A stretch of DNA of 64,000 nt from Squalus acanthias (GCA_030390025.1 CM059429.1:138384001-138448000), one strand, 5' to 3'; positions 4,655 through 64,000 are shown, numbered from the stretch's first letter. Program-made: numbers and translations. The notes: a model not told the origin generated them from the letters alone.

Positions 4655-5265
4655 TCAACAACACCAATAACAACTTGCGTCTTTAACGTAGTAAAATGTC
4701 CCAAGGCACCGAGCCACATAAGGGGATATATGGGCAGATGACAGGTAGGTTTTAAGGAGCGTAGTAAAGGAGGAAAGAGAGGTAGAGAGGTGGAGGTCTA
4801 GGGAGGGAATTCCAGAGTTTAGGGCCTCGGCAGCTGAAGGCACGGCCACCAATGGTGGAGTGATTAAAATCGGGATGCACAAGAGGCCAGAATTGGAGGA
4901 GCGCAGATATCTCAGAGGGTTGTAGGGCTGGAAGAAGTTACAGAAATAGGGAGGGACAAGGCCATTGAGGGATTTGAAAACAAGGATGAGAATTTTAAAA
5001 TCGAGGGGTTGCTTAACCAGGAGCCAATATAGGTCAATGAGCACAGGGATGATGGGTGAATGGGACTTAGAATCATAGAACTGTAACAGCACAGAAGGCC
5101 ATTCGGCCCATCGAGCCCGACTTGGTGCAGTTAGGATACGGGTAGCAGAGTTTTGGATAAGCTCAAGTTTATGGCGGGTGGAAGTTGGGAGGCCATCCAG
5201 GAGTGTGTTGGAATAGTCACGTCTAGAGGTAACAAAGACATGGATGAATGTTCCAGCAGCAGATG
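4655..5265 (-). mobile_element. L2 LINE 3' end
   Basis: DYSNTLLDGLP..IQNSATRILT..LDFKILILVFKSLNGL, typical L2 RT C-terminus. Confidence 0.8.
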
Positions 5266-5829
5266 AGCAGAGACAGAGGTGTGTGTGTGTGCCCTTGTGA
5301 TAAACTGACACATGAACGGCCATAAAGCCCATGTTTTGCTGCTCTTGGGCGCAAATCATAGAATAGTACAGCACAGAAGGAGTCCATTCATCCCATTGAG
5401 TCTGCGTCGGCTCTTTCGAAGAGCAATCCAGTTAGTCCCACTCCCCCGCTCTTTCCCCATATCCCTGCAATTTTTTCTCCTTCAAGTATTTATCCAATTC
5501 CCTTTTGAAGGCGACTATTGAATCTGTATCCACCACCCTATCAGGCAGTGCATTCCAAATCCTAACCACCCATTGTGTAAATTTTTTTCCCCTCATATTG
5601 GCTCTGGTTCTTTTGCCAATCACCTTAAATCTGTGCGCTAATACTTTGTTACACAATAGAATCCTCTCTTCCCTTCCTCTCCTGAAAGCACTGCCTGCCT
5701 GGGGTACAGTTTCAAGTATCTATTATTCACATGTAAGCTTTACAAATGAGCAGCCAACTTCAGCTCTATAATTAGCATCACTATGAGCATTAACCCTCCG
5801 CACCATCCTGGTTCAAGATGCACGCCAAG

Positions 5830-30100: not shown

Positions 30101-33100
30101 AACGTTAGCACAAGATTAGATTTGTAAACCTGAGGCTGACCAGATCGCTTAGGCTGCACATTCAGGTTCCCTAATATGTCACATCATGAAATAGTATAAT
30201 GTGGTTATACGTCACCGCAAGTCCCATGGAGTTTCTGCTTTTGGATGCTATTTGAGGAAGGCATTAAGCAAAGGCAAGTTTCCCTGCCCCCCCCCCCCCC
30301 CCCCGCACTCCCTCCCTCAGATCAAAGAAAAATTAGTAAGCAAGTCAATCTGTGGTCACCAGAAACCAGTTTAGTAGCAGCATTGGAAGAAGACTGGCAC
30401 CAGGGCACTTGTTTGCCCCATCAGTCAGAGAACAGGGGGACCTAATGAACGGGAAGGAATGTCTCATGTAGCTGGAGGAAGTTGACACTGATGAGCAGCT
30501 GCGTCCAGGAAGAGGAACTTAACCTTTAAACTAAAAATACCGTTTCTATTGACATTTCAATTGACCGTAATCTAAGATATTAAAACATTTTCTTATAGGC
30601 TGTCAGAATTTGATGTTGTTGTTACGACATATAGCCTTGTTGCAAAGGAGATCCCAGTGAAGAAGGAAAGAGGACAGTGTGCAGCCCAAGATGAGGAGGC
30701 GAATGTAAGTTGAGAATTTTGTACAGTGGTGTGTTTAGTGATCCCACTTGTAGATTTGAGTAGTATGTAATGCCTTGGCGTCTTCTCGAGTACACTGCTG
30801 CTTTTATGATTACCCTGCTATTGCTTTGTTGGAATGGTCACCCAACTAACAATTACCAGATCATCATTTCAGAATAATTCTGAGCACCTGTAGTATTTTG
30901 ACAGTGGGATAGCTCACTTGAAATATTTTTTGGAATGGGTGGGTCAGGCAGATTATAAGTGTGCTTTCTAATTGGGTAGTAGCAATTTCTGTGCTATCAA
31001 AAGAGACAGTGAAATGATGTTTGTTGCTTCCATATCAGAAAATCCATTGAGATGGTTAAGATGAGAGTAAGCAGTGGTGTACTTCATCTTTTCAATCCAA
31101 CCATGTTCCAATAAAAAACACACACTTTTTGTTCCTCTGCTGTTTTCAGGTCTTGGCAGAGGCAAAGTCTTCACATTCTCCTCTGCTGAAGTTAGCATGG
31201 GCTCGGGTCATCCTGGATGAAGCTCACAACATTAAAAACCCCCAAGTACAAACATCAATGGCAGTGTGTAAACTCCAAGCTAGAGCACGCTGGGCAGTCA
31301 CGGGAACGCCCATTCAGAACAACCTTCTGGATATGTACTCCTTGCTCAAGTAAGAAGACAGACCAGAGCACCCTGGCTTAAACTTCATTATTAAATTGTG
31401 TTCTTCGGACACTTACATTTTTACCTGTATTATCCCCATTAATGACTAGAGCATTTAAAAATTTATCCTAACATTGTTTTCATCTTCTTGATCTTGTTCC
31501 CCTCCTTTCTAAAGAAAAGTCTTCAAAATTGTTTTAGCTGTTGTTCCCATGTTATGTCGTTGAGACTAGTTAATTATAGCTGTTAATTGTGGAGCTTGGG
31601 CTGATTCTAAATTCTCATAGCTCTGCTTTCTAACCTTTCCCTATTTGTTCAGGTTCCTTCACTGTTCCCCATTCGATGAGTTCAAGCTTTGGAAGAATCA
31701 AGTGGATAATGGTACAAAGAAGGGTGGCGAACGCCTTAATATTATCACCAAAACCCTTCTGTTGCGGAGAACAAAGGACCAGCTTGACACCAGTGGAAAA
31801 CCTCTGGTATATCAGTCTCTATATTTCAATTTTGACAAAAAAAATCACTGTTTATACTGCAAGTTTAGCATTGCTCGCAAGTGATTTTGGCTCTGCACCA
31901 ATGCTAAACTGCAGTGTAAAGCTGACTTTGGGGCCCAGCCTGCCTCTATGAAGTGGGTTCTGTGTCAAACCTGTTTAAGACGTGCTCACTTTGTAAACCC
32001 ACCCAATCTCAATTTAAATATTTAGAGTGTATGGATTCTCCCCTTCAGACATTTAAGTTTTTAGCTGTTGGAGAGGGCTCTGTTTCTGCCTGTATCCAAA
32101 TATGCACACAATTCTTTCTTGAGGAGATAAGCGAGAGCCAGAGAATGGAAACAAACTTTTGCCTGACTGGAACCTAAACTGCTGCAACTAGTCTCAGATG
32201 GTAGCTGTGGTGTAACTGCACCTTTAAAGATCTCTATAGGATAAAAGATGGTACTTTATCAAAGTTCCAAGGATGCACAACTTTAAGCATTTCCTGATAA
32301 TTTTGGTCCTAAAAATCATCTAATTCTTGCTGGACTTGTAATAAGATGGGCAAATGGGAACTGTGGGACTGGTTTGCAGAACAGTAAACAGTAACATTTT
32401 AAATGCTTTTGCCTGGAGGAGGGGATCTCTTGTACTAAGTGAAGCTATATTTTGCCAGTTATTCTTGTGGCAAAATGTCCTTTTCTTTATTTCAATGGTG
32501 ATTTACAGGCATAATCGTATAAGAAAAAAGAAGTGATACACAACATGGGTTTTAAATTATTGGGCCATGTGTTGAAGTATCAGAATGTGATGGACAGAAC
32601 ATGTTGTTCCTGCCCTCTCATGCTACTTGGTACCTTTCCTTTTCCAATTTGCTCAGTTCCTGATCCCAGTCATTATGGAAACCAGGGAAAAGAAAGTTGT
32701 CAACTTGCCATGTTCATGTGATTTTTAGTGCCTGTCTAAGAGCAGCAATGGTGGAGGCCTGGGAATAGGATGCCACACTGTGTTCTCAGTCACAGGAAAT
32801 AGATAATCAGTAAGATTAGAAAAAGCAGGAAAAATTGAAGGGTACCATACTTTGAAAACTAACCTAAAGGCTGTGTTTCTGGACAGTTACATTTTCTGAT
32901 ACTTAGTCAGAGATAGACAGCTTGTTAGGTTTAGGGTTAGAATACCATAAAAATGTCTTCCTCTTGCTATTCAAATTGTGTAATTTGGACTACTGCTCTG
33001 TGGTCTTTGGTTCCTGTCAATCACAGCAGATCTGGAACCCAGGAGCCGCAGTAGAATTTTGGTATGTGACCTTTTGGAGTTTCCAGGTCAAAATCTTCAC

Positions 33101-42100: not shown

Positions 42101-45100
42101 CCTCAAGTATTCATGTGAACCATTTTAAATTTAAATACCATTTACTTTTATTATGTATGATAGATCAATCTCTAAATTGAGATTTAAATGGTGGGTAAAC
42201 ACTGTTGAAGTTTGAATAACTTTGCAAAAGATTGCAAGGGAATAATTACACAGCAACTTGTATTTATATACTGCCTTAATGTAGAATAACATTCCAAGGT
42301 GTAAGCAAAAATAGACTCCGAGCCAAAGGAGAGATTAGGAGAAGTGACCAAAATCTTGGTCAAAAAGGTGGGGTTTAAGGAGGGTCTTGAAAGAGGTGGC
42401 GAGGCAGAGATGACACCCAGGCGACTGAAGGAACAGTTGTCAGTGGTAGGGTGAAGGGAAGTGGGGGGGGGAGGGGGGGGAGTGTACAAGAGATTGGAGT
42501 CAGAGGAATGTGGAATTGTAAGGCTGAAGAAGGTTACACTGATAAAGAGGGGTGAGGCCATGGAGGGTTTTAAATGCAAGGATGGGATAAGAATTTTAAA
42601 TTTGAGGTGTTGGGTGACCAGGAGCCAATGTAGATCAGTGAGGATGGTGGTAGGCTCGTGGGATTTCATGTGGGACAGGATACAGGCATCAGAGTTTAAG
42701 GTGAGCTGAAGGGTGGTGGGTGGGAGGCTGGCCAGGAGATCATTGGGATAATTGAGTCTGGAGGTGTCAAAGGCATGTAAGAGGGATTAGGCGAAAGAGG
42801 AGCTGGGGTTGGGATGGAGATGGCTGCTGTTAGAGGTGGGAGTAAGTGGTCGTCTTGGTGGAGAGAAGGTGGCACTAGAAACTCAGCTCGGGGTCGAACA
42901 CATTGCTGAGGTTGCAGTCTGGTTCAGCCTGTGATGGTGGTCAGGGAGGGGGAGAGAGTCCGTGGCAAGGGTATGGAGTTAGTGGTGGGTGCCAGTTTTT
43001 AGCTGGAGGAATGTTTGGCTCATCCAAGAGTGAATGCTGGACAGGCGCGGAGGCAGTGGAGCGGTCGAGAGGTGGTGGGAGAAGTAGAGCTGGGTTTTAT
43101 CAGCGAATGTGTGAAAGATGACCCATGTCTGCAGATGATGACACCAAGGAGCAGCATGTACACGAGAAAGAAGAGGGGGCCAACGATACACCTGGAGGTA
43201 ATGGTGCAGGGGTGGGAACAGAAACCATTGCTAGAATTTAACACAGATATTAAATAAGGAACAATTTATTCTGTGCTTGTTGTAAGCTCAAACATAAATC
43301 TTTATAGGATACATAGTTTATAAATTATTTCAGTCCATAAAATAAGGAATGAATGACTTGTTGAAGTTGCCAACTATGGACCACAAATTTATTGGTCGAA
43401 TAATATGTTTTACATCAATACTCTCTTTACATTCTGTTCCTTTTGTTACCAGATCTCTGCACTATTAGAGGAACTAAAAGCAATAAGAAGTAACCCGGAA
43501 CCACAGAAAAGGTACATTTCCAAGAAGGTTTTATTTTTCAGGAAATCAATTATTAGATGATGGGAAGATGTTTTCTCCAGGTACAATGAAATCTGTGCAT
43601 CTTTGTATTTTTCTATAAAGCACTATGGATGTGGAAACAGTACTGAACATAGAGGACCTGAAATAGCGCACTGTAATTTGCGTTATTAAGTAGAGACTAA
43701 TGCCCATCAGTGCTCTGCAGAGCTGAATTGCTATAAAATGCAGGGTCAGCTCATTTGAATATCTACTGGTGGTTCTTGTGTAAAATCCCCAACTATGCTG
43801 GGGATTTTGGGAAATTAGAGTGCAACTTTTAAAAAGCCATGTCTAGTTAAAGATTGTAACAGCAAGCCAAGGGGAGTCGCAGGTAAGTAAGAAAGTGCTT
43901 GGCTCCGTGAGTTCATTGTAAGGTAGCTACATTGGATGGGGTAGGGGAATAGAAGGGGCACCCCTGACATCGAGAAGCTCGTCCTCTACAAGAAGCATGC
44001 CATGGAGCTGCTGGGGTTGCACTCTGCTCTAGCTCTGTGAGATGGTGAGGTCAGTAGAACAGTGTTGGCACCAGATTAGTGGGTGTACACCTACACGGTG
44101 TGAATTTTCCCCACTTTTCGGTAATGTCTCCACTAGAGGCAAAGACGGCCAAAAAGGAACAAAAGAAGGGCACACAATGTCATTGAGATGGACCTTCAAA
44201 CCCTCCTCTTCAGGTAAGAATAGAGAAACTGCTGAGTCTCTCTCAATGGCAGGAATTTTTTTTGTCTTGTCATGTAGAGAGAGGCCAACTCTCTTTCCCC
44301 CAGAGCTGCAGATCAATGCTGCAATAAATTCAATGGCCTGATGAGGGCAGGCAAGGCAACACACTGGCTGCTCTCACTTTTCTTCCTTTGGTAGCAGCAC
44401 ACTCTTTAAGCGCAGCCTTCTACACTTTTCTGTCTCTTTAAACCCAAGAGATTTATGCTTATCCATTCTTAGCTTGTACTCCTGTTTCCTATAGATCCAA
44501 TGCAGCAATAGGGACTGATGATGAAGAACAGAATAGAAGGGAAATCATCCTTGTGGACTGTGAGGATGATTATCCTGAGGGGGATAATAATGATGGAGAG
44601 GATGTGATAATCAAGCTCTGTAAAAAAGCGCATCAGTCACCTGACATATGCATAGCCAATATTACACACATTCCCCCGTGCCGGCCTGACATGACCGGGT
44701 GCCATAAATGTTGAGTGCGATTGTGACATTCATAGCCACAAACAGCTGTCAGGGCAGATGACCATGCCTGCAGGTCCTTTATGCAGCTTTCCTATTGCCT
44801 CTTTGGTGACATGCATCAATACACATACCCTCTCTAAGGCCTTCGCAGGACCTGTGTTGCATGTATATTCTTTGGGTGGGGGGGGGTGGGGTTTAATATC
44901 TTGTGGGGTTCTTCCTCCTTAATTGCTGCCTCGCTCTCCTTTCCTCCATATCCTCTCGCTCCTCCTCCGGTGGAGGGAGAGGAAGGCAAAATATCATGGT
45001 GGTCTTGCAGTTAGTCAGGAGCAAGTCCAAGGCTCAAAGTGGGGGAAAAAATCACTAAAACATAATTCCCAGCTGCAGTAATTGCTACTCAAACTTTCAG

Positions 45101-48100
45101 CTGTACTCGGGCTCAAAAGTTCCTCACTTTCACCAATACCAGCTGATCCTAGCAGCAGGTGCGCCTTTTAAAATTTGTTTTGGGGATTTGGGTGGCACTA
45201 GAAAGGCCACATTATTGCTCATCCCTATTTTTCCTGAGAAGGTGGTGGTGGGACTTCTCCTGGAACTGCTGCAATCCTTGTGGCAGTGGTGCCAGGATAT
45301 TGATATTGAGTGAAGATTTAGGAGCAATGATACAAGTCCAAGTCAGGATGGTGTATCAATTGGAAGGGAACTTGGAGATGATGGTGTTTCCATCATCTCC
45401 AAGTTCCTGTCCTTCTCAATGACAGGAGGTGCTGTTGAAGTAACCTTGATGAATGTTGCAATGCATCCTGTGGGTTATACATACTGCAGCCATATTGTGC
45501 TGGTAGTGAACGGGGTGGATTTTGAGTCCAGCAATAAGGGGCAGCAATCAAGCGAACTGCTTTAACCTGGATAGTGTTGAGTATCTTGCTGTTGTTGCCA
45601 CACCCATACAGCAAGTTTATCATATTCCTGACTTGAGCTTTGTAAATGGTGAATAGACTTTGAGTTATGGGGATGCACTACTCATCACAGCAAATTGACT
45701 TGTGTTTGCCTACATTACAGGAGTGACTATAATCAAAGGTAATTAATTGGCTGTAAAGTGCTTTAGGACATCCTGAGGTCATGAAAGGTGCTATATAAAA
45801 TACTCTTTTCTCATTCAAATTCACTCACCAATGTTTTCCATGTTTGCCAATTTGATTGTGGTGGAATCAGTATCTGAATTAGACCTCAATGTATGTAACT
45901 ATTCCGCATTATCTTGTGCCCTGTCTTACTTTCCCACTTTCAGTAGTTTCTTAATGCACAAACAAATCGAATGTTGAGGCTGTATTTACCATTTTGTTGC
46001 ATGCAACTATTGTTGGTCAATTCTCTCTCAGTGTCATAATTTCTCAGTGGACCAGCATGCTGCGCGTGGTAGCAGGCCACTTGGATCAAATCGGCCTGAC
46101 CTATGTTACTCTGGACGGCTCTGTGACTCCTAAACGTCGTATGGATTTGGTGGAGGAATTTAACACTGACCCTAAAGGACCTCAGGTACCCGCTGGCTGC
46201 TCTTTTGGGTTTTCTTGTGGGAAAGGAACCACAGATCCAGAATACGAAGGGAGCTTTGTTTTATTGCCAATTATCTTCCCTGAAGGTGCTAATGGGTGAT
46301 CAGGTACAGTTGTTGGCATCCCTCTAGTACCTTAGAGTTGTGAACTTTGAGTGAGGTTAGGCTGGGCTTAACTTTGGTACGTACACCTTCCCCTTACCCC
46401 TTGGAAAATAGCCTTCTAACACTTGCAGTCTAACCTTGCATATGAAGAATGGATGTTTGGATGAGGTACCAGAACACTGCTGGTACCCATAGGACCAAAC
46501 CCCAGCATGAGTCACCATCTTTGAGAGGTGGAAAGAAAATTGGACAAAAAAAAATTCTATAGTGGTTTGCATGCAGTTGTTTATATATCAGGAATTTCAA
46601 CAATGGGGCCCATTACTAAAAATGTAATATAAGTTCAGTCTGATGACATGTTGGGAAATCTACTGATATAGTCAAATCTACTTGGTTAAATCACTGTTTG
46701 TATGCACAGTTTATTTAAATACGGGGGTCCTGTATTTAAACCTGTGTGGTATCAGTAATGTGTAGTTTCTAAGACTTGATTATCTTGGGCATGCTTCCTT
46801 TCTAAATGCTTTCTCTCTTCTCACAGGTCATGTTGGTCTCTCTGTGTGCTGGGGGTGTGGGTTTGAATCTCATTGGAGGCAACCACCTCTTCCTGTTAGA
46901 TATGCACTGGTAAGATTAAGGATCAGCAGTAATGCAGATAGTTACAGACTATATTAAAATGTGATATTGGAAGGAAAGACACCTATTCCTTGCTGGAATT
47001 TGCGTGTGGATAGTTTTACACTGTTGCTTATAAACAACTACCTGATTTCAAACATTTTAATTCTCAATGTATTAATTCCTATTAATACCACATCACTTCA
47101 AATTTGTAGCTGGCAATAATGGCATGATTTACAGAAGTTATTGCATGTAAGTGACCAAGTATTTGCATGTCTCACTTCAATCTCATTAGCATCATCAATT
47201 AATGCATTTCTTTAACATCTGCTTTTTAAAGATGGGACTTGAGGAGCTGAATGTTTCCCTCCTTCATAGTAACCATTCGGTTCTTGAATTATTGAGAAAA
47301 TTCTCCCTTTTTTATTTCATTCGTGCAATTAATTTTCCCCTCTCTAGATTCTTCTCTTTACTCCTAGTCCACTTGTGCCTGTTTCAAATACTTGGGTATG
47401 AAGGCAGATAAGTAACCTAGTTCCAGGCCTCAACCAATGCTGCTCCAATCACAAAAGAACCCTTTGTTGACTCTCTTGGGTTTATTTTAAATGTTTTTCC
47501 CTCACTGTTGGTAGTGAAGCCATCTCTGATTAGTGCCTGCTCCCCCTCCCTCTCCTGCTTCCCATTCCCAAAGCTCAGCTGAGATTGGGGAGTTCTCGGC
47601 CAGGGACCTGTGTCCTACCATTTCAGACCAGGCTAGCTCTAATTAACCAAATTCAGATCATCTTATTTGCATAACCGAGTCACCAATTTATATAACTTTT
47701 AATGTCTTGATAATGTGGATTATTTATGAAACCAACACTAATGGAACGGTGTATGCTGCTAATGTGTTTTATGCATCTTTTTGTCCAAACACCTTTGCAT
47801 TTTATGTGTCTTGTGGTAGCACCTGCATGATGTTTGCAGGAGTTGTTCACAAATTTGCTAGTTTTTTGAAAAAGATGTCTCGATAAATCTAAAACTGATA
47901 TGATATTAAAATTAATGGAGTCAACAAAATATATTGATTATTGAATTCCTTCATTAAATTTCCTTCTGTAACCGGTCAAACTCATGAATGCACCCAATTC
48001 TGTTTTCAGGAACCCAGCACTGGAGGAGCAGGCTTCTGATCGAATTTACCGGGTAGGACAGCGCAAGAATGTCACTGTGCACAGGTAACTAGAGATCCTA

Positions 48101-52256: not shown

Positions 52257-53599
52257 ATACAATGGGTTAATGCAATGTCCCTGAGGTGTGAGTTTGAATC
52301 CAGCTCAGATTGCAATGGAAATCCCCTTTGCTGATGTAAGGACTCTTTGTGAAATGAGCTTAGGCAGACTTGACACAATGGCTCGTGATTGTGGGTGCAT
52401 TGCCCAAAACTGCCAACCATTCAGCACAAATTGACACAAAATTTTCAGTCTTGTTGTATAGCTGGGGAAGCTAGGTTCAAGGCACATTGTTGGAGCAAAG
52501 CAGAGGGAAGTTTATTTTACATCTGGGAATGTTTCAGGGTGACATGGGTAGCTAAAATAAGGAAAAGTGTTCTAATCCACAGAACTAGCCCTCGTTCATC
52601 ATATAAGCATACAAGCAATTGCCAAAATGTAACTTTAATTAAAAATAATTGTGATTTGATCCAACCTCCATTCTGTGGACCTTCATGTGAGTAATGGGAG
52701 CTTGATTTATAGTCTATTTAAAAATGAAATGTGTCATTGTGCTTCATTGCCTTTGGCTACAGGGAATGAAACGGACAGGTAGATATTTTTTTTAAATCTC
52801 TAGTTTATAACTGTGATAAAACCTTAAAATTCATTATTCAAGTATAATCCAGAGAAATTCCAACTGTTGAAAGTCTTTCATTTGTTTAAACTAGTGCTTT
52901 TCAAACTGTTCTGTTTGGCAAATCTTGCAAACACTCCACAGGACCATCAGTCCTGACTTACAAAAAAGGTATCAGCTACCTAAAGGAAACAGATGCTGTC
53001 ACGGTAGAAAAGATTTTTATTCGTATACAGCAAAATAAACAGAAGTCAACAACTAGAGAGAGCCAATGAGCTTGTGGGATCCCAGTTTAAAAACATGGTT
53101 TCAGCATCAGGTAATAGGTTGAATTAGTTGGAAGTGCAGATTTTTTTTTTGCTGAAAGATTTGCTCTAATAGCTGGTATTATATAATCTGTTGAGATGTT
53201 CTCCATTATATTGATTCCATATTACGTGCATTTCCTGCAGGTTGACAGTTATCAGTGTTTACAGACAAAAATTATTTAATCTGTTTGCAGTGTATACAGA
53301 TTCTAAATAAACCTATTGGAATAGCTCTATTATTTAATGGATTGCAAAGGGAAGCCTAAAGCGTATTCAATTTTTATGAAGTAAGGAAATAATCATTATA
53401 AACAATTAGCATCAAAACAGGAACTAGTAACAAAAAGTCCATTCGTGTCATTATTTATTCAGATCTCCCAAAACTCTACCTTCCAGAAGGACAGGAGCTG
53501 CAATGGCACGAGAGCTTTTGAGAAATGAAATGGGACATATTAGAATCATGCAAATGTTTATTACACAAAACCATGCTAAATAATTTTATTACTTACCAT

Positions 53600-53697
53600 T
53601 TACATAGGAATTTGAACACAGATCACTGCCGTCAGTAATAAACTCATTCCCACAAAGAAGATGAGGTAGCGTATGATTACTGGGACGGAACGGCCAT
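53600..53697 (-). CDS. IgSF copy 1 transmembrane exon (DGRSVPVIIRYLIFFVGMSLLLTAVICVQIPM*)
   Basis: CAG acceptor, phase-1 in frame with C1, ~22 hydrophobic residues containing Arg, TAA three bases before a G|GTAAGT donor. Not in the ORF track because it is short. Confidence 0.75.
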
Positions 53698-56600
53698 CTG
53701 TAACTAGAGTACATAGGGTGAGGTCACCCTTCTGTTATAATAGCTTGACAACCTGTTAATGCACTCCTAAGAAATTATTTTGCTCCTTTATTTTTTAACT
53801 GAGGCATTTTAACTGGGTTAACACTTTATCAAAATAACAAATTCAGGTCTGTCATAGATACTTTCAGTGGCTTCAGTCTCCCCCCTAAGTGATCTGAGCA
53901 TCTCCTAATGGAGTTGACTCATGCTACCCTATATCTACTTGTATAATAGCATAACCCAGGATGTAACAATAGTATCCGTTCGTGATCTGAACTTGATATT
54001 TCTTTTATGGGTGCTTCTTTAATCCTAAAGCGGATCAAGCAAACACTTGGTGTGAGACAAGGCCAGATACAAATCGTAAAGCTGCTTTATGACATAGTAA
54101 GGAGAGCAACCGATATGTTTTGATTCACTTAATTAAATCAGTTCAACTTATCTTCACGTATCAAAAGGCTGCCTTACTGACTTTTTAAACACAATGCCTT
54201 CTCATCCTCTAGCATTTCTAAACTCTGTCAGCGAAAGCTCTTGCAGCTTTCTGTTTAAAAACCTGACCGACTGCCAGTGTCTCTGTCTCTGCTTTTATCT
54301 CCCTTTGTTCAGAGATCAAAAATGGTCAAATAGTTTCAATGCGACACACTCCAACAGAGATGATTAGACATCGAACAGGACACTAATTTGCAGGTCTTCA
54401 GCATCTCAATCATCAACCAGTCAATCTGACTGACTGTGTATGATTTACAGCTCCGAAGAATCGGATATAGGAAGATGGAAAAACTTAAAATACTGGTCCA
54501 AAAAATCATTTAAACAGATTTATATTTTTATACTATAAATTACATTAATCTGACCATTCTGTATTAACCAAAATCCTGTGATTCAGCATATTACTGCACA
54601 TCATTATACTGAAACAGGCATTTGAAAAGTTCATAATTTTTGTCTTTGTAATTTATGTCTTATAGATTAACAGCATATGTCAATGTGTTGTTTGAGTTTG
54701 TAGATACCAATAGCACTGTGCAGATAAAGTTGTGACTTTAAATGGAGAAACAGTTGTTCTCCCTGTACATGGGCCCTAAATCTTAAAAAAAATAAAGGGT
54801 CTGTATGGTTACCCATTAATACAATTGTAATCCCCAGCTCTAAATGATGTTTAGAATGATGTTTTTCAACTTAAATTTAATTAACATTTGTGTCTAAAAA
54901 CTATTACATTAATATTCACATTTTAATTAGATTAAAATTAGAATGTCATTTTACGTTGTATTCTAAATAGACTTACAGGTAGCACTGGTAGTATATGAGG
55001 TGACCGGGTTAAACATTAATTATTATCTGGGAGGACTTTTATGATTTTTGATTGATTGGATATTATGCAAGTATTACTTGGAACTGATCTTACTAGAAAT
55101 GCTACAATTGTCCTTTTTACAGAATATGTAAATCACAGCAGTAATATTTTATGAATGCAATTGGTTAAGAGCAGTTAGATGCAAAGGAAGACAGTGCACA
55201 CGGATTGGAGTGATTTGTTCTTTTCTGGCTACAATAAGTAAATAAACTAGGACATAATTTTTGACTATAAATGCTCTCACTGTTATGATTAGAGCAAAGC
55301 AATAGAAAATGTCCATCAAACGGTATGTTTATCTCTCGTTAGGGGTCATTTAAAATGCCCTGTTCCACGCTGTACTTTAATATTGATACATAGTGAAGTA
55401 TGTATCAAACACCACACACACATGGCTTATTAAAATAACGCTAGCCCTACACTTAGAATTCAGACGGTAAAACTTGGGACATTTCACAAATATGCTGTGT
55501 TTAGCGATACAATTTCATCTTTTCATAGATCCAGTCAAATACTTCGGAGTGCAAATGTTATCTAGATATTTCTGATGAAGATCGACCTGAAATACATTTT
55601 AACAAAGTCACAGTACATTTCTGATTTTTTTAAATGCAGATTAGTTTTAAACAAGTTTGTCGTCTGTACTGACTTGTATCTCTTTTATATAAAAAGCTTG
55701 CGTATCCGCTCGCTAATGGGAATCGCCGTTAAAAACCTATTACCTTCCTACAGACACCATTATTGTATAGACAACTCGACCTGATCAACTCTCATGGCAG
55801 TAGCCCTTCCTTGAATCAAACTGTAGCACACAACGACTTGTTTATGTCTAATAAAGTGTGTGTATCAATTTTACCGTCTGTGCGTCATCCATGCCTTTGT
55901 TACCTCTAGACTTGACTATTCCAACGCACTCCTGGCTGGCCTCCTACATTCTACCCTACGTAAACTTGAGGTCATCTAAAACTCGGCTGCCCGTGCCCTA
56001 ACTCGCACCAAGTCCCGTTCACCCATCACCCCTGTGCTCACTGACCTACACTGGCTCCCAGTTAAACAACGCCTCGATTTCAAAATTTTTATCCTTGTTT
56101 TCAAATCCCTCCATGGCCTCGCCCCTCCCTATCTCTGTAATCTCCTCCAGCCCCACAACCCCGAGATACCTGCGCTCCTCTAATTCTGCCCTCTTGAGCA
56201 TCCCTGATTATAATTGCTCAACCATCGGTGACCATGCCTTCTGTTCCCTAGGCCCAAAGCTCTGGAATTCCCTGCCTAAATCTCTCCTCCTCTCTACCTC
56301 TCTTTCCTCCTTTAAGACGATCCTTAAAACCTACCTCTTTAACCAAGCTTTTGGTCACCTGCCCTAATTTCTCCTTATGTGGCTTGGTGTTAAATTGTTT
56401 GTCTTGTAACACTCCTGTGAGGCGCCTTGGGACGTTTTACTATGTTAAAGGCGCTATAGAAATACAAGTTGTTGGTGTTGCCTGACTCCAATACTTACTA
56501 TTGTGCCATTTCCATTTATGCATAAAACAACTTCTGGCATTCCACTGGTTGGATGTGGAGTAACTGGGAGCAGCTTTATTCCCTTTGTCAACAACTTACC

Positions 56601-58556
56601 TCCGCTGTCACCGAAACTTTTCCTCACTGACCCTTTCAGTGTAACGTGTTGAACCTGACAGGTGACGGCGGTTCCCGGGTCCCAGAGAGTGTCTGTAATC
56701 CGCAGCCGGGAGCTCAGGTTGAAGGTGCCGTCACTGTTTACTGTCAGGGAGTCCGGTTCTATTTGATAGGAGACATCTCCCGCTACAATCCAAGAAATGT
56801 TCAGACCTCTCGGGAAAAATCCCGCCGCCACACAAGTCAGAGACTCAATCCCAACAACTTCATTCTCGGGATCCGCAGAGAGATAGACTTCAGGTTTCGC
56901 TAAATAAACATTAAAATATCACAAGTTATATCAAAGCAAATATATAGAGAGCAACTGTAGATTAAACTCGTGCATATATGATACTAAATGGGAAATTATA
57001 TGATTTGATTAGATTATGTCTCAATATACAAATCACAAGATACCTATAATAAAATATAACACATGTACCCGAATGAAATACGAGCCAGAATAATATCCCG
57101 TGACTTTACAATAAGTTTCGTTCGCTTTGTTTTTCTTTGGACCAATAGCAAGAAAATTAAATGAAGTGACTATGCTTATTTCACAAAATCAGTGTCGCTA
57201 TTTGCAATTCGCTTGTTATAGAAATAATATCCCGCTGTTAGAATAGAATCGGACAGCACAGAAGGAGGCCATCCGCCCATCGTGCCTGTGCCGGCTCTTT
57301 GAAAGGGCTGTCCAATTAGTCCCGCTCCCCTGTTCTTTCCCCATGGCATTGCAATGTTTTTTCTTTTTCAAGTATTTATCCAGTATTGGTATCAGCATTC
57401 TATAATTTTGTCTTTTGGATGTTTTTCTTCAAACCAAGTGTTTTTTAAACTATATGAAAGTGTCTGCTGTTTAATGGATATTGTGGAATTAAAGTTAAAC
57501 GCTGGTGTATTCAGTCCAGTCCCCAGTGCACAGAGTATGTCAGTCCCAGATTAGATATGTGTGTGGAGCGAGTTCTGATTCCTTTGCCCCAATACATTGA
57601 ACTATTTCAGTTTTGATGCGGAGATGCCGGTGTTGAACTGAGGTGGACAAAAGTGAGAAGTCGCACAACACCAGGTTATAGTCCAACAGTTTTATTTGAA
57701 ATCACAAGCTTTCGGAGCGCTGCTCTTTCGTCACTTCACCTGACAAAGGAGCAGCCGTTCCGAAAGCTTGTGATTTCAAATAAAACTGTTGGACTATAAC
57801 CTGGTGTTGTGCGACTTCTCACTTTTATTTCAGTTTTGGTTCATCTAATTACCTTGGATGTTCAGTTCTGTTCCCTCTCCTGTAAATTCTTTCCAGGGCC
57901 GAGGCTCCTCTCTAAGAACCAGGCAGTGGTAAGTGTCGGAATCGTCCACAATCACCTCCCGGATGATAAGCGAGCCCTCAGATAGAGACACACGAGAGCT
58001 TTTATTGAGGGCATTCCTAGTTTTGTTGCCTCTGATGCCAGGATTGTCTCTTGCCCTAAACCAATAATATCTCACCGAATCCAGCCGCTCCTCTCCGGGT
58101 AACAGGGTGCAATTGATCCGAGCTGTCTGTCCTCTCAGGAGGGACAGAGCTAAAGGAGACTGGATCACTTTCAGACCGACAGCAGGCCCTGGGACATAAA
58201 ATGACAACAAGTAGGAACATGACATTCAAATTATCTGAGTCCAACTAGAATAACTGTCACGATAGCAAAATACTGCAGATGCTGGAAATCCGAAATAACA
58301 ACAGAAAACGCTGGAAAAACTCAGCAGGCCAGGCAGCATCCGTAGAGAGAGAAAGAGAGTTGACGTTTCAGGTCGATGAAAGGTCATCGACCTGAAACGT
58401 CAACTCTCTTTCTCTCTCTACGGATGCTGCCTGGCCTGCTGAGTTTTTCCAGCGTTTTCTGTTGTTATTTAGAATAACTGTCAACTGGGGTAAGAGTAAA
58501 TGCTTACCTAAGACAAGGAGCCAGAGTTTGAGAACAATGTTTCTAAATGGAGCCAT
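53600..58556 (-). CDS. Non-rearranging VJ-C1-TM IgSF receptor gene, copy 1 (PRARP/NCR3/SIRP-like), 4 coding exons, 260 aa
   Basis: Leader, V, C1 and TM exons all join with phase-1 GT-AG introns (49+336+300+98 = 783 nt). Confidence 0.85.
55885..56480 (+). mobile_element. L2 LINE 3' end in the C1-TM intron
   Basis: HAFVTSRLDYSNALLAGL..LTDLHWLPVKQRLDFKI..GPKLWNSLP..FKTILKTYLF. Confidence 0.85.
56600..56899 (-). CDS. IgSF copy 1 C1-set exon
   Basis: AKPEVYL..LTCVAAGFFPRGLNISW..NSDGTFNLSSRLRI..W....VTCQVQHVTL; C1-set hallmarks (GFxP, NxDGTF, CxVxH). Confidence 0.93.
57616..57825. mobile_element. Family A palindromic Penelope-like insertion in the V-C1 intron (copy at ~63310-63519)
   Basis: Inverted arms; TSD TATTTCAGTTTTG at 57603-57615 and 57826-57838; hammerhead core mutated (CTGACAA). 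Confidence 0.75.
57853..58188 (-). CDS. IgSF copy 1 V-set exon with in-exon J-like G strand
   Basis: VIQSP..ARINC..YYWFR..GSLIIREVIVDDSDTYHC..EFTGEGTELNIQ; canonical Cys/Trp/D-x-x-x-Y-x-C and GxGT motifs. Confidence 0.93.
58260..58469. mobile_element. Family B palindromic insertion in the leader-V intron of IgSF copy 1 only
   Basis: Near-perfect hairpin; 14-bp TSD TAGAATAACTGTCA at 58246-58259 and 58470-58483; empty site visible in copy 2 (~63940-63953). Confidence 0.9.
58508..58556 (-). CDS. IgSF copy 1 leader exon (MAPFRNIVLKLWLLVL-G)
   Basis: ATG, hydrophobic signal peptide, G|GTAAGC phase-1 donor. Confidence 0.85.
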
Positions 58557-60002
58557 ATTGCTGAAGAAAGCACCGAGTCACCGGTTGGTTAGACCTGTTG
58601 GCTGGTCTAAAGAATATTAAGATCGCTGGGAGATTATTGTGGTTGTAGCGCACAGTGCGTCACATCACACCGGCTGCTGGTTACCTGCACCTCAGGGGCC
58701 GGTGCCCAGGGGTCCCAGTAAAGCCCACCCTTCAACTGCTGGATTAGTTTCATTTAAGCATAGCATATTGTGATATGATTTACTTTATTATCAATGCAGT
58801 GTGTAAACATTCTGGGTCTATTTCTTCCTGGATTTTACTACATGTTTGTGTTTTAATGGATGGGGGTATTGTTGGGGTGTGGAGGGCCCCCATGTTTTTG
58901 ATGGCCATGGCCCCAAGAATTCTTACTCTGGCTCTGTATTCAGTCTCCTTCAGCTTTATCGCCCTCTGTCAGACCAACAGCAGGCACTGTTAAATTAAAA
59001 TTACAAGTGAATAAAGCTAAGGGAAGCTGAAAACTGCACAGAACTGCAGTAAATAGTTTTTTTTCAAATGAAAATGAAAGCTGACCAAAGGCAATGGAGT
59101 AGAATTGAAGAATCTCGGTCGCTAGAAATTCAAATGCTGACCAAGTTGTTGATCGGAGGCAGTCAACTTGAAATTGAAGTTTACTAAAGTGATCAAGTAC
59201 ATCACCTCACAACACTGCAACCTGTTTCTAAAAACACGCCAAGCAGTTCAGTGTAATTTTGTTAAATGCAGGAATAGAATATTTTTAATTTTAGATGAAC
59301 AATCATTTACTTAAGTAGGTGAGAAAGCTACTTTAATTATTTTTATTCATGCTCGGGATGTGGGCATCACTGGCAAGGCTGGTATTTCTAGTCCGTGGGA
59401 CAACTTTCCCAATTTTGGCACAAGTCCCCAGATGTTAGCGAGGAGGAATTTGCAGGGTCAACTGGGCTGGATGTGCCGTTGTTGTGTTCGAAACGGATGC
59501 CTAGGTCGATGCCGGATGGTCCGTCAGGTTTTATTCCTCTACGTGTTTGTCGCAGTTCAATACAACGGAATGGCTTGCTAGGCCATTTCAGAGGGCAATT
59601 AAGAGTCAGCCACATTGCGGTTGGTCTGGAGTCACATATAGGCTAGATTGGGTAAGGACGGCAGGTTTCCTTCCCTGATTGACGTTAGTGAAAAATTTTC
59701 TTCGTAAAGCAATTTTTTTTTTTTAATTACCATTTCTGATTGCAGCATAACCCTTTGAACCATGAGGTGGTGGCACAGTGGTATACAGTCGGCAAGGAGT
59801 GGCCCTGGGAGTCCTCAACATTGACTCTGGACTCCATAAAATCTAATGGCAGCAGGTCAAACATGGGCAAGGAAACCTCCTGCTGATTACCACCTACCGC
59901 CCTGACTCAGCTGATGAATCTGTACTCCTCCATGTTGAACACCACTTGGAAGAAGCACTGAGGCAAGGGCACAGAATATACTTCAATGTCCATTGACTCC
60001 AT

Positions 60003-61695
60003 GGCCACGATTTCCCCTACTTGGGTGGGTCCGTGGTGAGCCCCGGCCTCGCTGCTGGCTCCAGCCCGCTGTCCATAATGATTTTCCCCTGATTGGGCTT
60101 GTTGAACCCATCCAGCGCATTTGCCGGCCAATTGAAGGAATTTGATGACGCGTCATCAGCCGGTTTCCTTAAAGAGACCATGAGCAAATTTATTTTGACA
60201 GTTGTGCTGTCTGTGTTTTACAGCATTGAGGTGCTGCAAGCACTGACCAGCACTGCACAGAGGTGCACAGCTGCACCCAGGCTCTCCCACAGCATGCAGG
60301 GAGGTTCTCTTCCCTTCCAATGGGCGGAAGAGACCGCCCCAGGAGACCAACGCAGCCTGGTTGCACATTCCACAGGAGGACACAAGCAGGGATGTCGTCA
60401 GGAGGACCAGGCTACAGTGGCGCAAACCTTTCAATGATCTCAGTAGATTACGAAACGTTACTGCAAAGCCACACTCAACCTCATCCTGCTGTGCCACTCA
60501 TCACACCCCCATCACTCTGCCTTCCCTACCCTACTCCTGCACATCCTTACTCACACCAACTTACCTTGCACCTCCACCCATCCCTCTCTTATTTACATTA
60601 TTACTTCCCCATCTCACTAGCCACCCCTCACACTCGCCCACATCCTAGTCCAATCAAACCAACTAACAACATACAAGGGTAGGCACTTGGGTGTTTTATG
60701 CAATGTTCATGTAAAGTTTCTATTAATGTGGTGTCATTGAAAGCTTTATTTTCAGCAATTTGCATTCTTGGACAAATCTGTGTGCACCTTTGGAAGTGGC
60801 TTAGTGAATTGCAGTGAATGGTGAGACATAACGGTAATCCCTGCAATGGTGATGAGTGTGAAAGGAATGGCTTGGTCATTGTAGGGATGCTTTATGGTGT
60901 TGGTGTGGGGTGGTGCCAACCTGGCACATCATGTGGCAGCCATATGGGTGTACAGCGTAAAGTGAAGTAAATCTGGCTATGGTGAGGCCATCCCTGGCCT
61001 CCCGGGCAGCAATGTGGTCGGGTGCTGATGCCCTGTGTCCTGTGCAGCATCAGTTGATTGCGGAGAAGGTTGGTGGTGCTGCTGGTGTGCCTGGTGATGT
61101 TGGTGTTGGGGCTGATCGTGGTGGGATTCAGAGCACCAAGGTGAGGTAGTTTCAAGGGCACTGATGCTGATGTAATAGATGGCAGGTGAACTTGAAATGA
61201 CCGAAGCGATCTGTTAATGTTGAAAGAGGTTGTTTCAATGAGGTGACACTGGATAGAGAGTTTACTCCAAACACTTGCAACCTACATCAATCTGGCTTCC
61301 AAATGCAGTAAGCAACAGCTTCTGAACTTGGAAAGTGAACAGCTGTGAGATGGGAGCTTTTATAGCACATTTGCAGCTGCCAAGTAATGAGATGATTCCA
61401 CGGCCATTCAACTCCAGCCCTGCTTACCTGACGTGATCCCCGAGCAGCGAGAGCACCGTGGGCAACCTCGTAAAATGTAAAGGTGTGCTTAAATACTTCT
61501 TAATGTGTTGTTAACAAGGTCATAATGACCTGAATTACCTCCCCCGTTGCTGCGTGTCAGGTCTGTTCAGTGCTGACAGACCCGACATCTGGGAAAGGTG
61601 CGTGGCAGCGGGTTGACACCGGGGCCCCGACACGCTGTTGAAAAAAAACATTTTCCCACCTGACTCGCCACTGATCGCGCCCACTGACCACCCAA
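60003..61695 (+). mobile_element. Related Harbinger-like element, right terminus truncated where the L2 fragment begins
   Basis: Inverted homolog of 16331-18414 ([20 protein letters not shown]); the last ~12 nt of the TIR are missing at 61695. Confidence 0.6.
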
Positions 61696-62177
61696 ACTCG
61701 CACCAAGTCCCATTCACCCATCTCCCCTGTGCTCGCTGACCTACATTGGCTCCCAGTTAATCAGCGCCTCGATTTCAAAATTCTCATCCTTCTTTTCAAA
61801 TCCCTCCATGTCCTCGCCCCTCCCTATCTCTGTAATCTCCTTCAGCCCCACAACCCACCAAGATATCTGCGCTCCTCTAATTCTGCCCTCTTGAGCATCC
61901 CTGATTATAATTGCTCAACCATCGGTGACCATGCCTTCTGTTCCCTAGGCCCTAAGCTCTGGAATTCCCTGCCTAAATCTCTCCTCCTCTCTACCTCTCT
62001 TTCCTTCTTTAAGACGATCCTTAAAACCTACCTCTTTAACCAAGCTTTTGGTCACCTGCCCTAATTTCTCCTTATGTGGCTTGGTGTTAAATTGTTTGTC
62101 TTGTAACACTCCTGTGAGGCGCCTTGGGACGTTTTACTATGTTAAAGGCGCTATAGAAATACAAGTTGTTGGTGTTG
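61696..62177 (+). mobile_element. L2 LINE 3' end (apparently chimeric) at the duplication breakpoint
   Basis: ORF 61729-62064 LHWLPVNQRLDFKIL..; 5' part diverged from 56001, 3' part near-identical. Confidence 0.85.
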
Positions 62178-62296
62178 CCTGACTCCAATACTTACTATTG
62201 TGCCATTTCCATTTATGCATAAAACAACTTCTGGCATTCCACTGGTTGGATGTGGAGTAACTGGGAGCAGCTTTATTCCCTTTGTCAACAACTTAC

Positions 62297-62596
62297 CTCC
62301 GCTGTCACCGAAACTTTTCCTCACTGACCCTTTCAGTGTAACGTGTTGAACCTGACAGGTGACGGCGGTTCCCGGGTCCCAGTGAGTGTCTGTAATCCGC
62401 AGCCGGGAGCTCAGGTAGAAGGTGCCGTCACTGTTTCCTGTCAGGGAGTCCGGTTCTATTTGATAGGAGACATCTCCCGCTACAATCCAAGAAATGTTCA
62501 GACCTCTCGGGAAAAATCCCGCCGCCACACAAGTCAGAGACTGAATCCCAACAACTTCATTCTCGGGATTCGCAGAGAGATAGACTTCAGGTTTCG
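62297..62596 (-). CDS. IgSF copy 2 C1-set exon
   Basis: 295/300 identical to the copy 1 C1 exon; splice sites intact. Confidence 0.9.
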
Positions 62597-63546
62597 CTAA
62601 ATAAACATTAAAATATCACAAGTTATATCAAAGCAAATATATAGAGAGCAACTGTAGATTAAACTCGTGCATATATGATACTAAATGGGAAATTATATGA
62701 TTTGATTAGATTGTCTCAATATACAAATCACAAGATACCTATAATAAAATATAACACATGTACCCGAATGAAATACGAGCCAGAATAATATCCCGTGACT
62801 TTACAATAAGTTTCGTTCGCTTTGTTTTTCTTTGGACCAATAGCAAGAAAATTAAATGAAGTGACTATGCTTATTTCACAAAATCAGTGTCGCTATTTGC
62901 AATTCGCTTGTTATAGAAATAATATCCCGCTGTTAGAATAGAATCGGACAGCACAGAAGGAGGCCATCGGCCCATCGTGCCTGTGCCGGCTCTTTGAAAG
63001 GGCTGTCCAATTAGTCCCGCTCCCCTGTTCTTTCCTCATGGCATTGCAATGATTTTCCTTTTCAAGTATTTATCCAGTATTGGTATCAGCATTCTATAAT
63101 TTTGTCTTTTGGATGTTTTTCTTCAAACCAAGTGTTTTTTAAACTATATGAAAGTGTCTGCTGTTTAATGGATATTGTGGAATTAAAGTTAAACGCTGGT
63201 GTATTCAGTCCAGTCCCCAGTGCACAGAGTATGTCAGTCCCAGATTAGATATGTGTGTGGAGCGAGTTCTGATTCCTTTGCCCCAATACATTGAACTATT
63301 TCAGTTTTGATGCGGAGATGCCGGTGTTGAACTGAGGTGGACAAAAGTGAGAAGTCGCACAACACCAGGTTATAGTCCAACAGTTTTATTTGAAATCACA
63401 AGCTTTCGGAGCGCTGCTCCTTCGTCACTTCATCTGACAAAGGAGCAGCCGTTCCGAAAGCTTGTGATTTCAAATAAAACTGTTGGACTATAACCTGGTG
63501 TTGTGCGACTTCTCACTTTTATTTCAGTTTTGGTTCATCTAATTAC

Positions 63547-63882
63547 CTTGGATGTTCAGTTCTGTTCCCTCTCCTGTAAATTCTTTCCAGGGCCGAGGCT
63601 CCTCTCTAAGAACCAGGCAGTGGTAAGTGTCGGAATCGTCCACAATCACCTCCCGGATGATAAGCGAGCCCTCAGATACAGACACACGAGAGCTTTTATT
63701 GAGGACATTCCTAGTTTTGTTGCCTCTGATGCCAGGATTGTCTCTTGTCCTAAACCAATAATATCTCACCGAATCCAGCCGCTCCTCTCCGGGTAACAGG
63801 GTGCAATTGATCCGAGCTGTCTGTCCTCTCAGGAGGGACAGAGCTAAAGGAGACTGGATCACTTTCAGACCGACAGCAGGCC
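63547..63882 (-). CDS. IgSF copy 2 VJ exon
   Basis: 333/336 identical to the copy 1 V exon; splice sites intact. Confidence 0.9.
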
Positions 63883-63977
63883 CTGGGACATAAAATTACA
63901 ACAAGTAGGAACATGACATTCAAATTATCTGAGTCCAACTAGAATAACTGTCAACTGGGGTAAGAGTGAATGCTTAC

Positions 63978-64000
63978 CTAAGACAAGGAGCCAGAGTTTG
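63978..64000 (-). CDS. IgSF copy 2 leader exon (3' part; runs off the window)
   Basis: ..KLWLLVL-G|GTAAGC, identical to the copy 1 leader end. Confidence 0.8.

Follow-up and report, generated by a model that had tools for sequence, protein, structure and literature searches.

The 64,000-nucleotide stretch of Squalus acanthias DNA analyzed here (GCA_030390025.1 CM059429.1:138384001-138448000; hereafter the window, numbered from its first letter) contains, on the minus strand between positions 53,600 and 58,556, a gene whose product in our judgment is probably an immunoglobulin superfamily (IgSF) member, a type I membrane protein belonging to a paired receptor family. The predicted protein has one V domain that already includes a J-like strand (VJ), one C1-set domain (C1) and a transmembrane (TM) helix with an arginine. 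It is related to the SIRPs yet falls in a V clade of its own, and the block of leader, V and C1 exons (L-V-C1) appears to have been recently duplicated. The gene model was searched exon by exon and not as a joined protein, and its exons are as follows.

58556-58508, minus strand: leader exon of copy A, with the ATG at 58556 and the donor cttag/gtaagc in phase 1, found by tblastn to the leader of the related protein P0001.
58188-57853, minus strand: V-set exon of copy A, acceptor cccag/gg, donor caag/gtaatt, Pfam V-set E 3.3e-9.
56899-56600, minus strand: C1-set exon of copy A, acceptor tttag/cg, donor ggag/gtaagt, Pfam C1-set E 6.9e-15.
53697-53597, minus strand: transmembrane exon, acceptor ttacag/at, stop codon at 53602-53600, followed by the donor atg/gtaagt at 53597/53596.

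All introns of the gene are GT-AG and in phase 1, and its exons together hold 780 coding bases, which by simple arithmetic is 260 codons. An earlier note on this DNA had proposed a 260-residue protein with a leader, VJ, C1 and TM architecture; the length agrees, and the split leader, the single-exon VJ, the C1 exon and the TM exon are all in place with GT-AG boundaries and Pfam V-set and C1-set matches. The V exon is uninterrupted: framework region 1 (FR1), YHC, a loop of 12 residues and FTGEGTELNIQ follow one another as far as the donor. The sequence YHC-LVLREEPRPWKEFT-GEGTELNI that the note had quoted lies inside this single exon, in which a loop resembling complementarity-determining region 3 and a J-like G strand are found together. 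The note had also seen no recombination signal between V and J. A scan for recombination signal sequences (RSS), each defined as a CAC-heptamer with at most 1 mismatch and a nonamer with at most 2 mismatches separated by a spacer of 12 or 23 bp (+/-1), found 0 such heptamer/nonamer pairs across the whole 64-kb window, compared with a mean of 0.4 in 20 shuffles, and extends that observation to the entire stretch. The V domain of this receptor does not and cannot rearrange, and its J-like G strand is encoded in the germline within the V exon. The TM exon translates as GRSVPVIIRYLIFFVGMSLLLTAVICVQIPM up to the stop codon, with one Arg within the helix and five residues beyond it. The stalk between the C1 domain and the helix has no Cys, which argues against an immunoglobulin (Ig)-like or T cell receptor (TCR)-like disulfide-linked chain pair.

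Relatives of the gene were sought with the V exon among 1.84 billion representative proteins. Sixty-three proteins were matched at E<=1e-3 and 10 at E<=1e-10. Only 4-5 clusters were close, and the full-length V matches were four elasmobranch proteins at 52-72% identity. The best match, P0001, in turn retrieved 16 proteins at E<=1e-8 among 2284 candidates, every one of them from an elasmobranch. The names given to these 16 by NCBI are mixed: four are SIRPβ1-like, five SIRPα(PTPNS1)-like, three Ig kappa-like, one TCRβ-like and one Ig heavy chain-like, and two are uncharacterised. Two profile searches were made, each limited to at most 8000 candidates sharing words with the query, and within that limit neither retrieved Ig, TCR, UrIg, tapasin or B7 sequences that could act as outgroups. 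The family profile gave 20 matches, all elasmobranch, for a species total of 14, and the second search brought in, besides two weak CD166 hits, a small number of proteins from sturgeon, frogs, teleosts and birds. Proteins of Scyliorhinus torazame that are named 'kappa light chain-like' proved to be multi-V proteins with no C1 hit.

The family contains more than one type of membrane anchor. Among 19 family sequences, 10 have an uncharged TM helix and a tail with multiple tyrosines, 2 have an uncharged helix and other tails, 2 have an Arg in the helix and the remaining 5 have no TM. The inhibitory-type helix reads GFSKYYF...LIVPFCLWII and is followed by a tail with two to four YxxV/L/I motifs; the tail motifs seen in the family are LHYAxV, TEYAVLKV, YSTV and IYASL. 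Both proteins with an Arg-containing helix come from rays, namely P0070 (Mobula hypostoma) and P0072 (Hemitrygon akajei), each of 270 amino acids with ...IPFILRAVIITVGTSLLLLVVIA... and a short tail. Their Arg-TM tails match the window once only, at 53698-53621, which is the TM exon (E 0.002, 45-50% identity), and on this sequence match the Arg helix of the two ray proteins is homologous to that of the window gene. In trees of both the V and the C1 domains, P0070 and P0072 are placed among inhibitory forms from their own ray lineage, a pattern to be expected of paired receptors whose ectodomains keep being exchanged or duplicated. We therefore favor, as part of the explanation that we hold to be probable, that the window gene represents the activating type within a paired receptor family found throughout the elasmobranchs. 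Rays use the canonical FGxGT J motif. In two of them, P0003 (Hypanus) and P0064 (Mobula birostris), the protein is V-C1-C1 with two nearly identical C1 domains, a near-identity suggesting that an exon was recently duplicated inside the gene; in the window, by contrast, it is the whole L-V-C1 block that was copied.

Three of the 16 relatives are named 'immunoglobulin kappa light chain-like' by NCBI, and VJ plus a single C1 domain is also the architecture that a germline-joined shark Ig light-chain gene would have. This explanation is scarcely credible, however, as it is contradicted by the TM and tail exons: the gene has a TM exon with an Arg, its relatives have tails with immunoreceptor tyrosine-based inhibitory motifs (ITIMs), and no C-terminal Cys is present. 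Furthermore, across 14 species the family is conserved as one clade that has TM types of its own, and the best light chain in the PDB scores lower than SIRPα.

Evidence of transcription was obtained from a related species. No run recorded as RNA contains the V exon; in the nine runs listed, the share of V-exon words is 0.14 or lower. Four runs from four organisms, which carry the guessed label 'RNA?', were aligned to 53500-58700, with informative pieces coming from X5 and X2 only; the joins without introns argue that they are RNA. Record 22 of X5 is a 1005-nt contig at a depth of 44.7 that aligns to the minus strand at ~91% identity to the window; given this level of identity, the X5 organism is a related species and not Squalus acanthias. 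Positions 1-335 of the contig align to 58190-57853 and positions 336-622 to 56899-56613, joining V to C1 exactly at the predicted splice sites. X5 record 23 spans 58632-58507 and ends at the leader donor, and the 5' untranslated region in the transcript of the related species extends to at least 58632, while X2 record 16 ends at the V acceptor. A contig with the same depth (44.7) explains the X5 depth in two bins over 53500-53847 and the differences at 53631, 53639 and 53666, and the distances from these to the ends of the piece place it at ~53597-53700. We infer that this third X5 piece represents the TM exon and stops at the donor that follows the stop codon. The joints found in the runs are otherwise mostly repeat joints, and among these no back-joint from C1 to V, such as a four-domain form would produce, was seen. 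V-C1 splicing of the orthologue does occur in a related species, and the spliced transcripts that the earlier note had thought worth looking for were thus found in the form of the V-C1 join of the X5 contig.

A second, partial copy of the gene lies upstream of the first. The unit of duplication and the exons of copy B are as follows.

55996-61690: tandem-duplication unit A, 5,695 bp, defined by blastn; unit B begins at 61691 and runs beyond the end of the window.
63978-64000, minus strand: leader exon of copy B, 3' end only, aligning to 58508-58530 and cut by the end of the window.
63547-63882, minus strand: V-set exon of copy B, with 3 substitutions relative to copy A, all of them changing an amino acid.
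62297-62596, minus strand: C1-set exon of copy B, with 5 substitutions relative to copy A, all of them changing an amino acid.

By blastn, 61691-63953 matches 55996-58259 at 98.4% identity over 2266 columns, and 63940-64000 matches 58470-58530. The 5,695-bp offset, together with the start of copy B exactly at the end of unit A, means that the L-V-C1 block was duplicated head-to-tail. The TM exon is outside the duplicated block, and only one is present in the window. The two copies differ by 1.26% in exonic and 1.42% in non-exonic sequence, and both retain open frames, the canonical Ig residues and GT-AG sites. The duplication of L-V-C1 in Squalus acanthias is recent and is located upstream of a single TM exon. 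Copy B may be spliced to the shared TM exon, contribute to a V-C1-V-C1 protein, or give rise to a secreted form.

Among proteins of solved structure, the closest to the family over V and C1 together is SIRPα. When the family profile was compared with the PDB, human SIRPα (2wng) gave an unbroken alignment of 68.0 bits that spans V and its first C1 domain, and 43.2 bits for the second C1 domain, making it the best contiguous V+C1 match. Motifs shared with SIRPα include WFR in framework region 2, GxGTEL and then AKP at the boundary of V and C1, and HVTL-G at the end of C1, and GEGTELNIQ aligns with the G strand of the first domain (d1) of SIRPα. In the ESM Atlas, the nearest look-alikes are SIRPα clusters (0.96). 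The likeness to SIRP includes a V domain with a J-like G strand joined to a C1-set domain, as well as inhibitory forms with four tail tyrosines and activating forms with a basic TM residue and almost no tail. There are also differences. SIRPs have two C1 domains (V-C1-C1), whereas the elasmobranch family has one, with two only in the rays P0003 and P0064. SIRP-type proteins are only ~25% identical to the elasmobranch family, compared with ~30% for VJ-C1 proteins of sturgeon, paddlefish and amphibians. The basic TM residue is an Arg in the window gene and a Lys in SIRPβ, and the genomic neighborhood, beside a gene for an SNF2-family helicase, appears to differ from that of SIRP.

To place the family among its relatives, trees were built separately for the two domains. 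The V tree contains 66 of 242 V-domain hits, those that run from profile position <=10 to >=104 with i-E<1e-7, after 16 near-duplicate isoforms were removed. The C1 tree contains 38 of 59 hits spanning >=65 profile positions, after 12 ids had been taken out, nine of them as near-duplicate isoforms and three as long proteins with multiple domains. Both trees were built without Ig, TCR, UrIg, NKp30, tapasin, B7 or human SIRP sequences. In the V tree, the family forms one clade of 17 rows, including both copies from the window, with support of 100/97. SIRP-type V domains form a clade of their own (13 rows from lungfish, lizards, a snake, cattle and one unnamed protein) with support of 99/95, and a tree made to unite the family with the SIRP-type rows is worse by 17.45 log-likelihood units (lnL) and is rejected with a p-AU of 0.006, for a group that was named after the tree had been seen. 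In the C1 tree, the family has support of 96/94 and the order among the other groups is unresolved. The suggestion in the earlier note that this is a separate family, not one inside SIRP, is borne out by the distinct V clades, in a tree from which human SIRPs are absent. Among the groupings that the note had said would count against it (NCR3LG1/B7, tapasin, SIRP or germline-joined shark IgL), the one that this tree could address, a place inside SIRP, was thus not seen. On sequence, the family is related to SIRP yet separate from the SIRP-type V clade.

Outside the elasmobranchs, V-C1 relatives at ~30% identity occur in a chimaera, sturgeon, paddlefish and amphibians. Those with a VJ-C1-TM structure are P0044 of paddlefish, P0031 of a caecilian, P0058 and P0040 of frogs, and P0094 of sturgeon; NCBI names P0044 NCR3LG1-like or tapasin-related-like, and P0031 and P0058 PTPNS1-like. 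BLASTP with the family member P0065 matched P0044 at E 2e-32 (32% over 263 residues), P0031 at 7e-32 and P0042 at 4e-30, compared with ~2e-13 and 25% identity for the SIRP-type protein P0053. The YYYF... helix and the order of the tail motifs are common to the elasmobranch family and the paddlefish, caecilian and frog proteins. Indeed, P0044, P0094, P0031, P0040 and P0058 are VJ-C1-TM-ITIM proteins of the same architecture as the elasmobranch family, carrying varied automatic NCBI names that include Ig λ-like. Judged by sequence comparison, and with the same good but incomplete confidence that we attach to the explanation as a whole, these sturgeon, paddlefish and amphibian proteins are the closest relatives of the family. 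A second VJ-C1-TM family, separate from the one studied and ~30% identical to it, is represented by P0042 (Callorhinchus) of a chimaera and P0045 (Pristis) of a sawfish. Its members have a short IYxxL tail and are named Ig kappa- or lambda-like by NCBI and UniProt. In Pristis, P0045 and P0001 are probably on the same chromosome.

Given the extent of the resemblance, the gene could be orthologous to SIRPβ/SIRPα and thus the shark's version of a true SIRP, one that has lost one C1 domain. The NCBI names, the best contiguous match among solved structures with its shared motifs, the SIRPα clusters among the Atlas look-alikes, the four-tyrosine tail with its paired forms, and the V-C1-C1 arrangement of the rays P0003 and P0064 would all fit this explanation. 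However, we consider it unlikely, as the SIRP-type V domains have their own clade (99/95) and resist a joint grouping (17.45 lnL, p-AU 0.006, with the group named post hoc), P0065 is far closer to P0044 (E 2e-32) than to SIRP-type P0053 (~2e-13), and the gene adjoins an SNF2 helicase, which is not a checked SIRP neighborhood.

The earlier note had gone further and proposed that the gene, as PRARP-like or as a new sister family, is a candidate relic of the receptor that preceded RAG. When the V exon alone was compared with the PDB, the scores were 27.6 bits for VNAR, 26.4 for an Ig light-chain V, 21.6 for TCR Vα and 20.1 for the V of SIRPα. No weight was given to this edge of the antigen receptors because Ig and TCR V domains number in the thousands in the PDB, whereas SIRPs amount to just a few. 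UrIg2 (9dmx) had the highest total PDB score for both the C1 exon and the family profile, with a best single stretch of 60.7 bits; its total is high because it is a sum over three C domains. A λ-type chain reached 48.7 bits against the family profile. UrIg is described as secreted with three C1-type domains, and UrIg2 as having nine or more C domains, in PMC12227049, where both are disulfide-linked dimers expressed in liver and gill and linked to the major histocompatibility complex (MHC) or an Ig/TCR complex. The window gene resembles UrIg and UrIg2 in being elasmobranch and non-rearranging, and in having a single-exon VJ, a split leader and true C1 domains, and differs from them in its one C1 domain, its lack of a stalk Cys and its Arg-TM, with ITIM tails in relatives. 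As to the linkage to the MHC or the IgH/TCRαδ complex that marks UrIg and UrIg2, the one neighbor that the 64-kb window shows is the SNF2 helicase.

Other non-rearranging proteins with a joined VJ or J-like G strand are known, including CD79, NITR, SIRP, CD8, NKp30 and PRARP according to PMC11599192, and VJ genes such as those for NKp30 and PRARP lie within the MHC according to PMC10751288. The name PRARP was found nowhere among the matches of the protein and profile searches. PRARPs reportedly consist of a single VJ-type V domain with no C domain, form disulfide-linked dimers, occur in non-mammalian jawed vertebrates and include members with ITIM-type tails. Both they and the window gene are thus non-rearranging VJ genes, whereas, if this description holds, only the window gene has a C1-set exon and lacks a stalk Cys. 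The VJ-C1 structure that the earlier note gave for the PRARP family would then be wrong. NITRs and NKp30 share a germline VJ-type V domain and activating forms whose helix has a basic residue, ITIM forms occurring in NITRs as well; unlike the window gene, neither has a C1-set domain, NITRs having an I-type second domain or none and NKp30 consisting of V only. The Atlas structure search lists clusters related to tapasin at TM 0.49-0.55, and neither NCR3LG1/B7 nor tapasin/TAPBPR was among the top 60 PDB hits. A rearranging Ig or TCR chain was considered and rejected, as there is no RSS-like site in 64 kb and the gene has a TM exon with an Arg, no stalk Cys and ITIM-tailed relatives.

We regard it as rather improbable that the gene is a surviving close relative of the VJ-C1 gene that the RAG transposon entered, either PRARP-like or a third relic like the UrIgs, and closer to Ig and TCR than to innate receptors. 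The single-exon VJ, split leader and true C1 domain agree with such an origin, as do the canonical FGxGT J motif of rays, the slightly higher scores of the V exon alone against VNAR, Ig light-chain V and TCR Vα than against SIRPα V, and the top total score of UrIg2 for the C1 exon. The region that probably corresponds to this location in humans also fits, being an IgSF-rich 1p13 segment with the order PTGFRN-CD101-TTF2-TRIM45-VTCN1 in PMC11565109. Nevertheless, the difference in V scores is what the sampling of the PDB would produce, and SIRPα is the best match over V and C1 together; the stalk has no Cys with which to form a disulfide-linked dimer; ITIM tails and Arg-TM forms are a feature of innate paired receptors; and a J-like G strand is also listed for CD79, NITR, SIRP, CD8, NKp30 and PRARP in PMC11599192. 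The pre-RAG relic stays a proposal of low probability without specific support.

The window gene is predicted to encode a receptor with a split signal peptide, a germline VJ V domain, one C1 domain, a short Cys-free stalk, an Arg-containing helix and a five-residue tail. By analogy with known paired receptors, the Arg helix would recruit an adaptor that has an acidic TM residue and an ITAM (immunoreceptor tyrosine-based activation motif), as in SIRPβ/SIRPα, NKp30 and the activating KIR, LILR and NITR receptors. The tyrosine tails of the ITIM forms would, on the same model, recruit SH2 phosphatases, and the activating and ITIM forms could read one common ligand through the V domain.

Several points weigh against an activating member of a paired family at this locus. 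ITIM partner forms are known from other species and none lies in the window, where tblastn with nine relatives found no inhibitory TM or tail exon, and so the case for pairing in Squalus acanthias comes from other species. The adaptor pairing, the ligand and the cell type are inferred only, by analogy. No RNA run from Squalus acanthias itself was found, expression support coming from a related species only, and the C1-to-TM junction is deduced from contig depth. In the V tree, the sister of the family is the 13-row sturgeon, paddlefish and amphibian group with support of 91/88, which is below the star threshold. Finally, all eight of the exonic differences between copies A and B change amino acids (8/8), a pattern that fits relaxed constraint as well as diversifying selection.

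The last of these points raises the alternative that copy A, copy B or both have lost their function in Squalus acanthias and are decaying into pseudogenes, and the near-equal divergence of exons (1.26%) and non-exonic sequence (1.42%), the lack of a TM exon of its own for copy B, the presence in copy A of a palindrome of 222 nt within intron 1 and the failure to find an RNA run of the species would agree with it. On the other hand, 8/8 non-synonymous changes is not significant because about three quarters of random changes are expected to be non-synonymous, both copies have kept open frames, canonical Ig residues and GT-AG sites, and the orthologue is transcribed and spliced in a related species. 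Decay is quite improbable in our view.

The gene that neighbors the receptor is arranged with it tail to tail.

26172-48085, plus strand: SNF2-family helicase gene, with motif exons at 26172-26318, 31150-31350, 46806-46910 and 47972-48085 that carry motifs I, II, V and VI.

Pfam recognizes SNF2-rel_dom in this gene at E 1.7e-19 and 5.9e-7, along with Helicase_C. The earlier note had named the neighbor TTF2. A helicase of the SNF2 family on the plus strand is indeed present, and the name TTF2 is plausible, with no named match confirming it: the best solved relative of one helicase exon is RAD5, in a PDB that contains no TTF2, and the Atlas gives 'SNF2-related' only. That human TTF2 lies in the IgSF-rich region 1p13, as the note also stated, fits the gene order in PMC11565109, in which a 200-kb human segment contains part of PTGFRN, CD101, TTF2, MIR942, TRIM45 and part of VTCN1. 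A 453-codon open exon on the plus strand (14564-15925), upstream of the helicase motifs, is rich in Ser, Lys and Glu and has no Pfam match; it is probably a poorly conserved N-terminal exon of the helicase gene. An open reading frame (ORF) of 154 amino acids at 12575-13036 likewise matched no Pfam family. Inside a helicase intron, minus-strand ORFs with reverse-transcriptase-like sequence occur at 25119-28032 (for example 27379-28032 and 25482-25988), and are probably fragments of long interspersed nuclear elements (LINEs).

Repeated elements are also found within and around the receptor gene. The palindrome in intron 1, which is present in copy A only, occupies 58271-58492 (222 nt) and has 109-nt arms that are 91% complementary with 4 nt between them; because copy B is without it, it was inserted after the duplication. 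A second palindrome is located in the V-C1 intron of both copies, at 57649-57826 and 63343-63520, with 71-nt arms that are 99% complementary and a 36-nt loop. An Rfam scan of 53000-64000 found no family at the gathering score, leaving the palindromic insertions unmatched. At 55885-56460, 57254-57336, 57502-57849 and 58198-58545, contig depth in the runs of the four organisms ranges from thousands to >100,000, and given these depths the four segments are high-copy interspersed repeats common to related species. The repeat at 55885-56460 carries a recurring ORF, ...DLHWLPVKQRLDFKI..., that is also present at 4655-5374, 42184-42669 and 61729-62064.

What the analysis shows at this locus is an innate-type paired receptor rather than an antigen-receptor precursor, and the locus is a clean example of a true C1 domain joined to a single-exon VJ. 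In PMC12227049, looking for genes that keep an intact VJ in one exon is called 'of great interest' with regard to how Ig and TCR arose. No description of a shark VJ-C1 SIRP-like family was found in the literature searched, which covered few subscription journals and is thus weak evidence of novelty; the supplementary tables of PMC12227049 and PMC10751288 could contain more VJ genes that bear on this question. A broader and tentative proposal, which we consider doubtful at present, is that the gene and its sturgeon, paddlefish and amphibian relatives make up an undescribed, gnathostome-wide lineage of non-rearranging VJ-C1 receptors with activating and inhibitory members, distinct from SIRP, UrIg and PRARP, and located in sharks within the TTF2-TRIM45 interval of an MHC-paralogous segment. 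Were this true, the lineage would be a third mapped VJ-C1 relic for the argument that links a proto-MHC to the antigen receptors, and might be ancestral to the SIRPs. Should the family prove separate from the SIRPs, then paired ITIM and Arg-TM VJ-C1 receptors would date to the base of the jawed vertebrates, and the family would supply an outgroup for trees of SIRP, UrIg and the antigen receptors. If instead it is simply the shark SIRP, then the SIRP system would be older than is usually stated.

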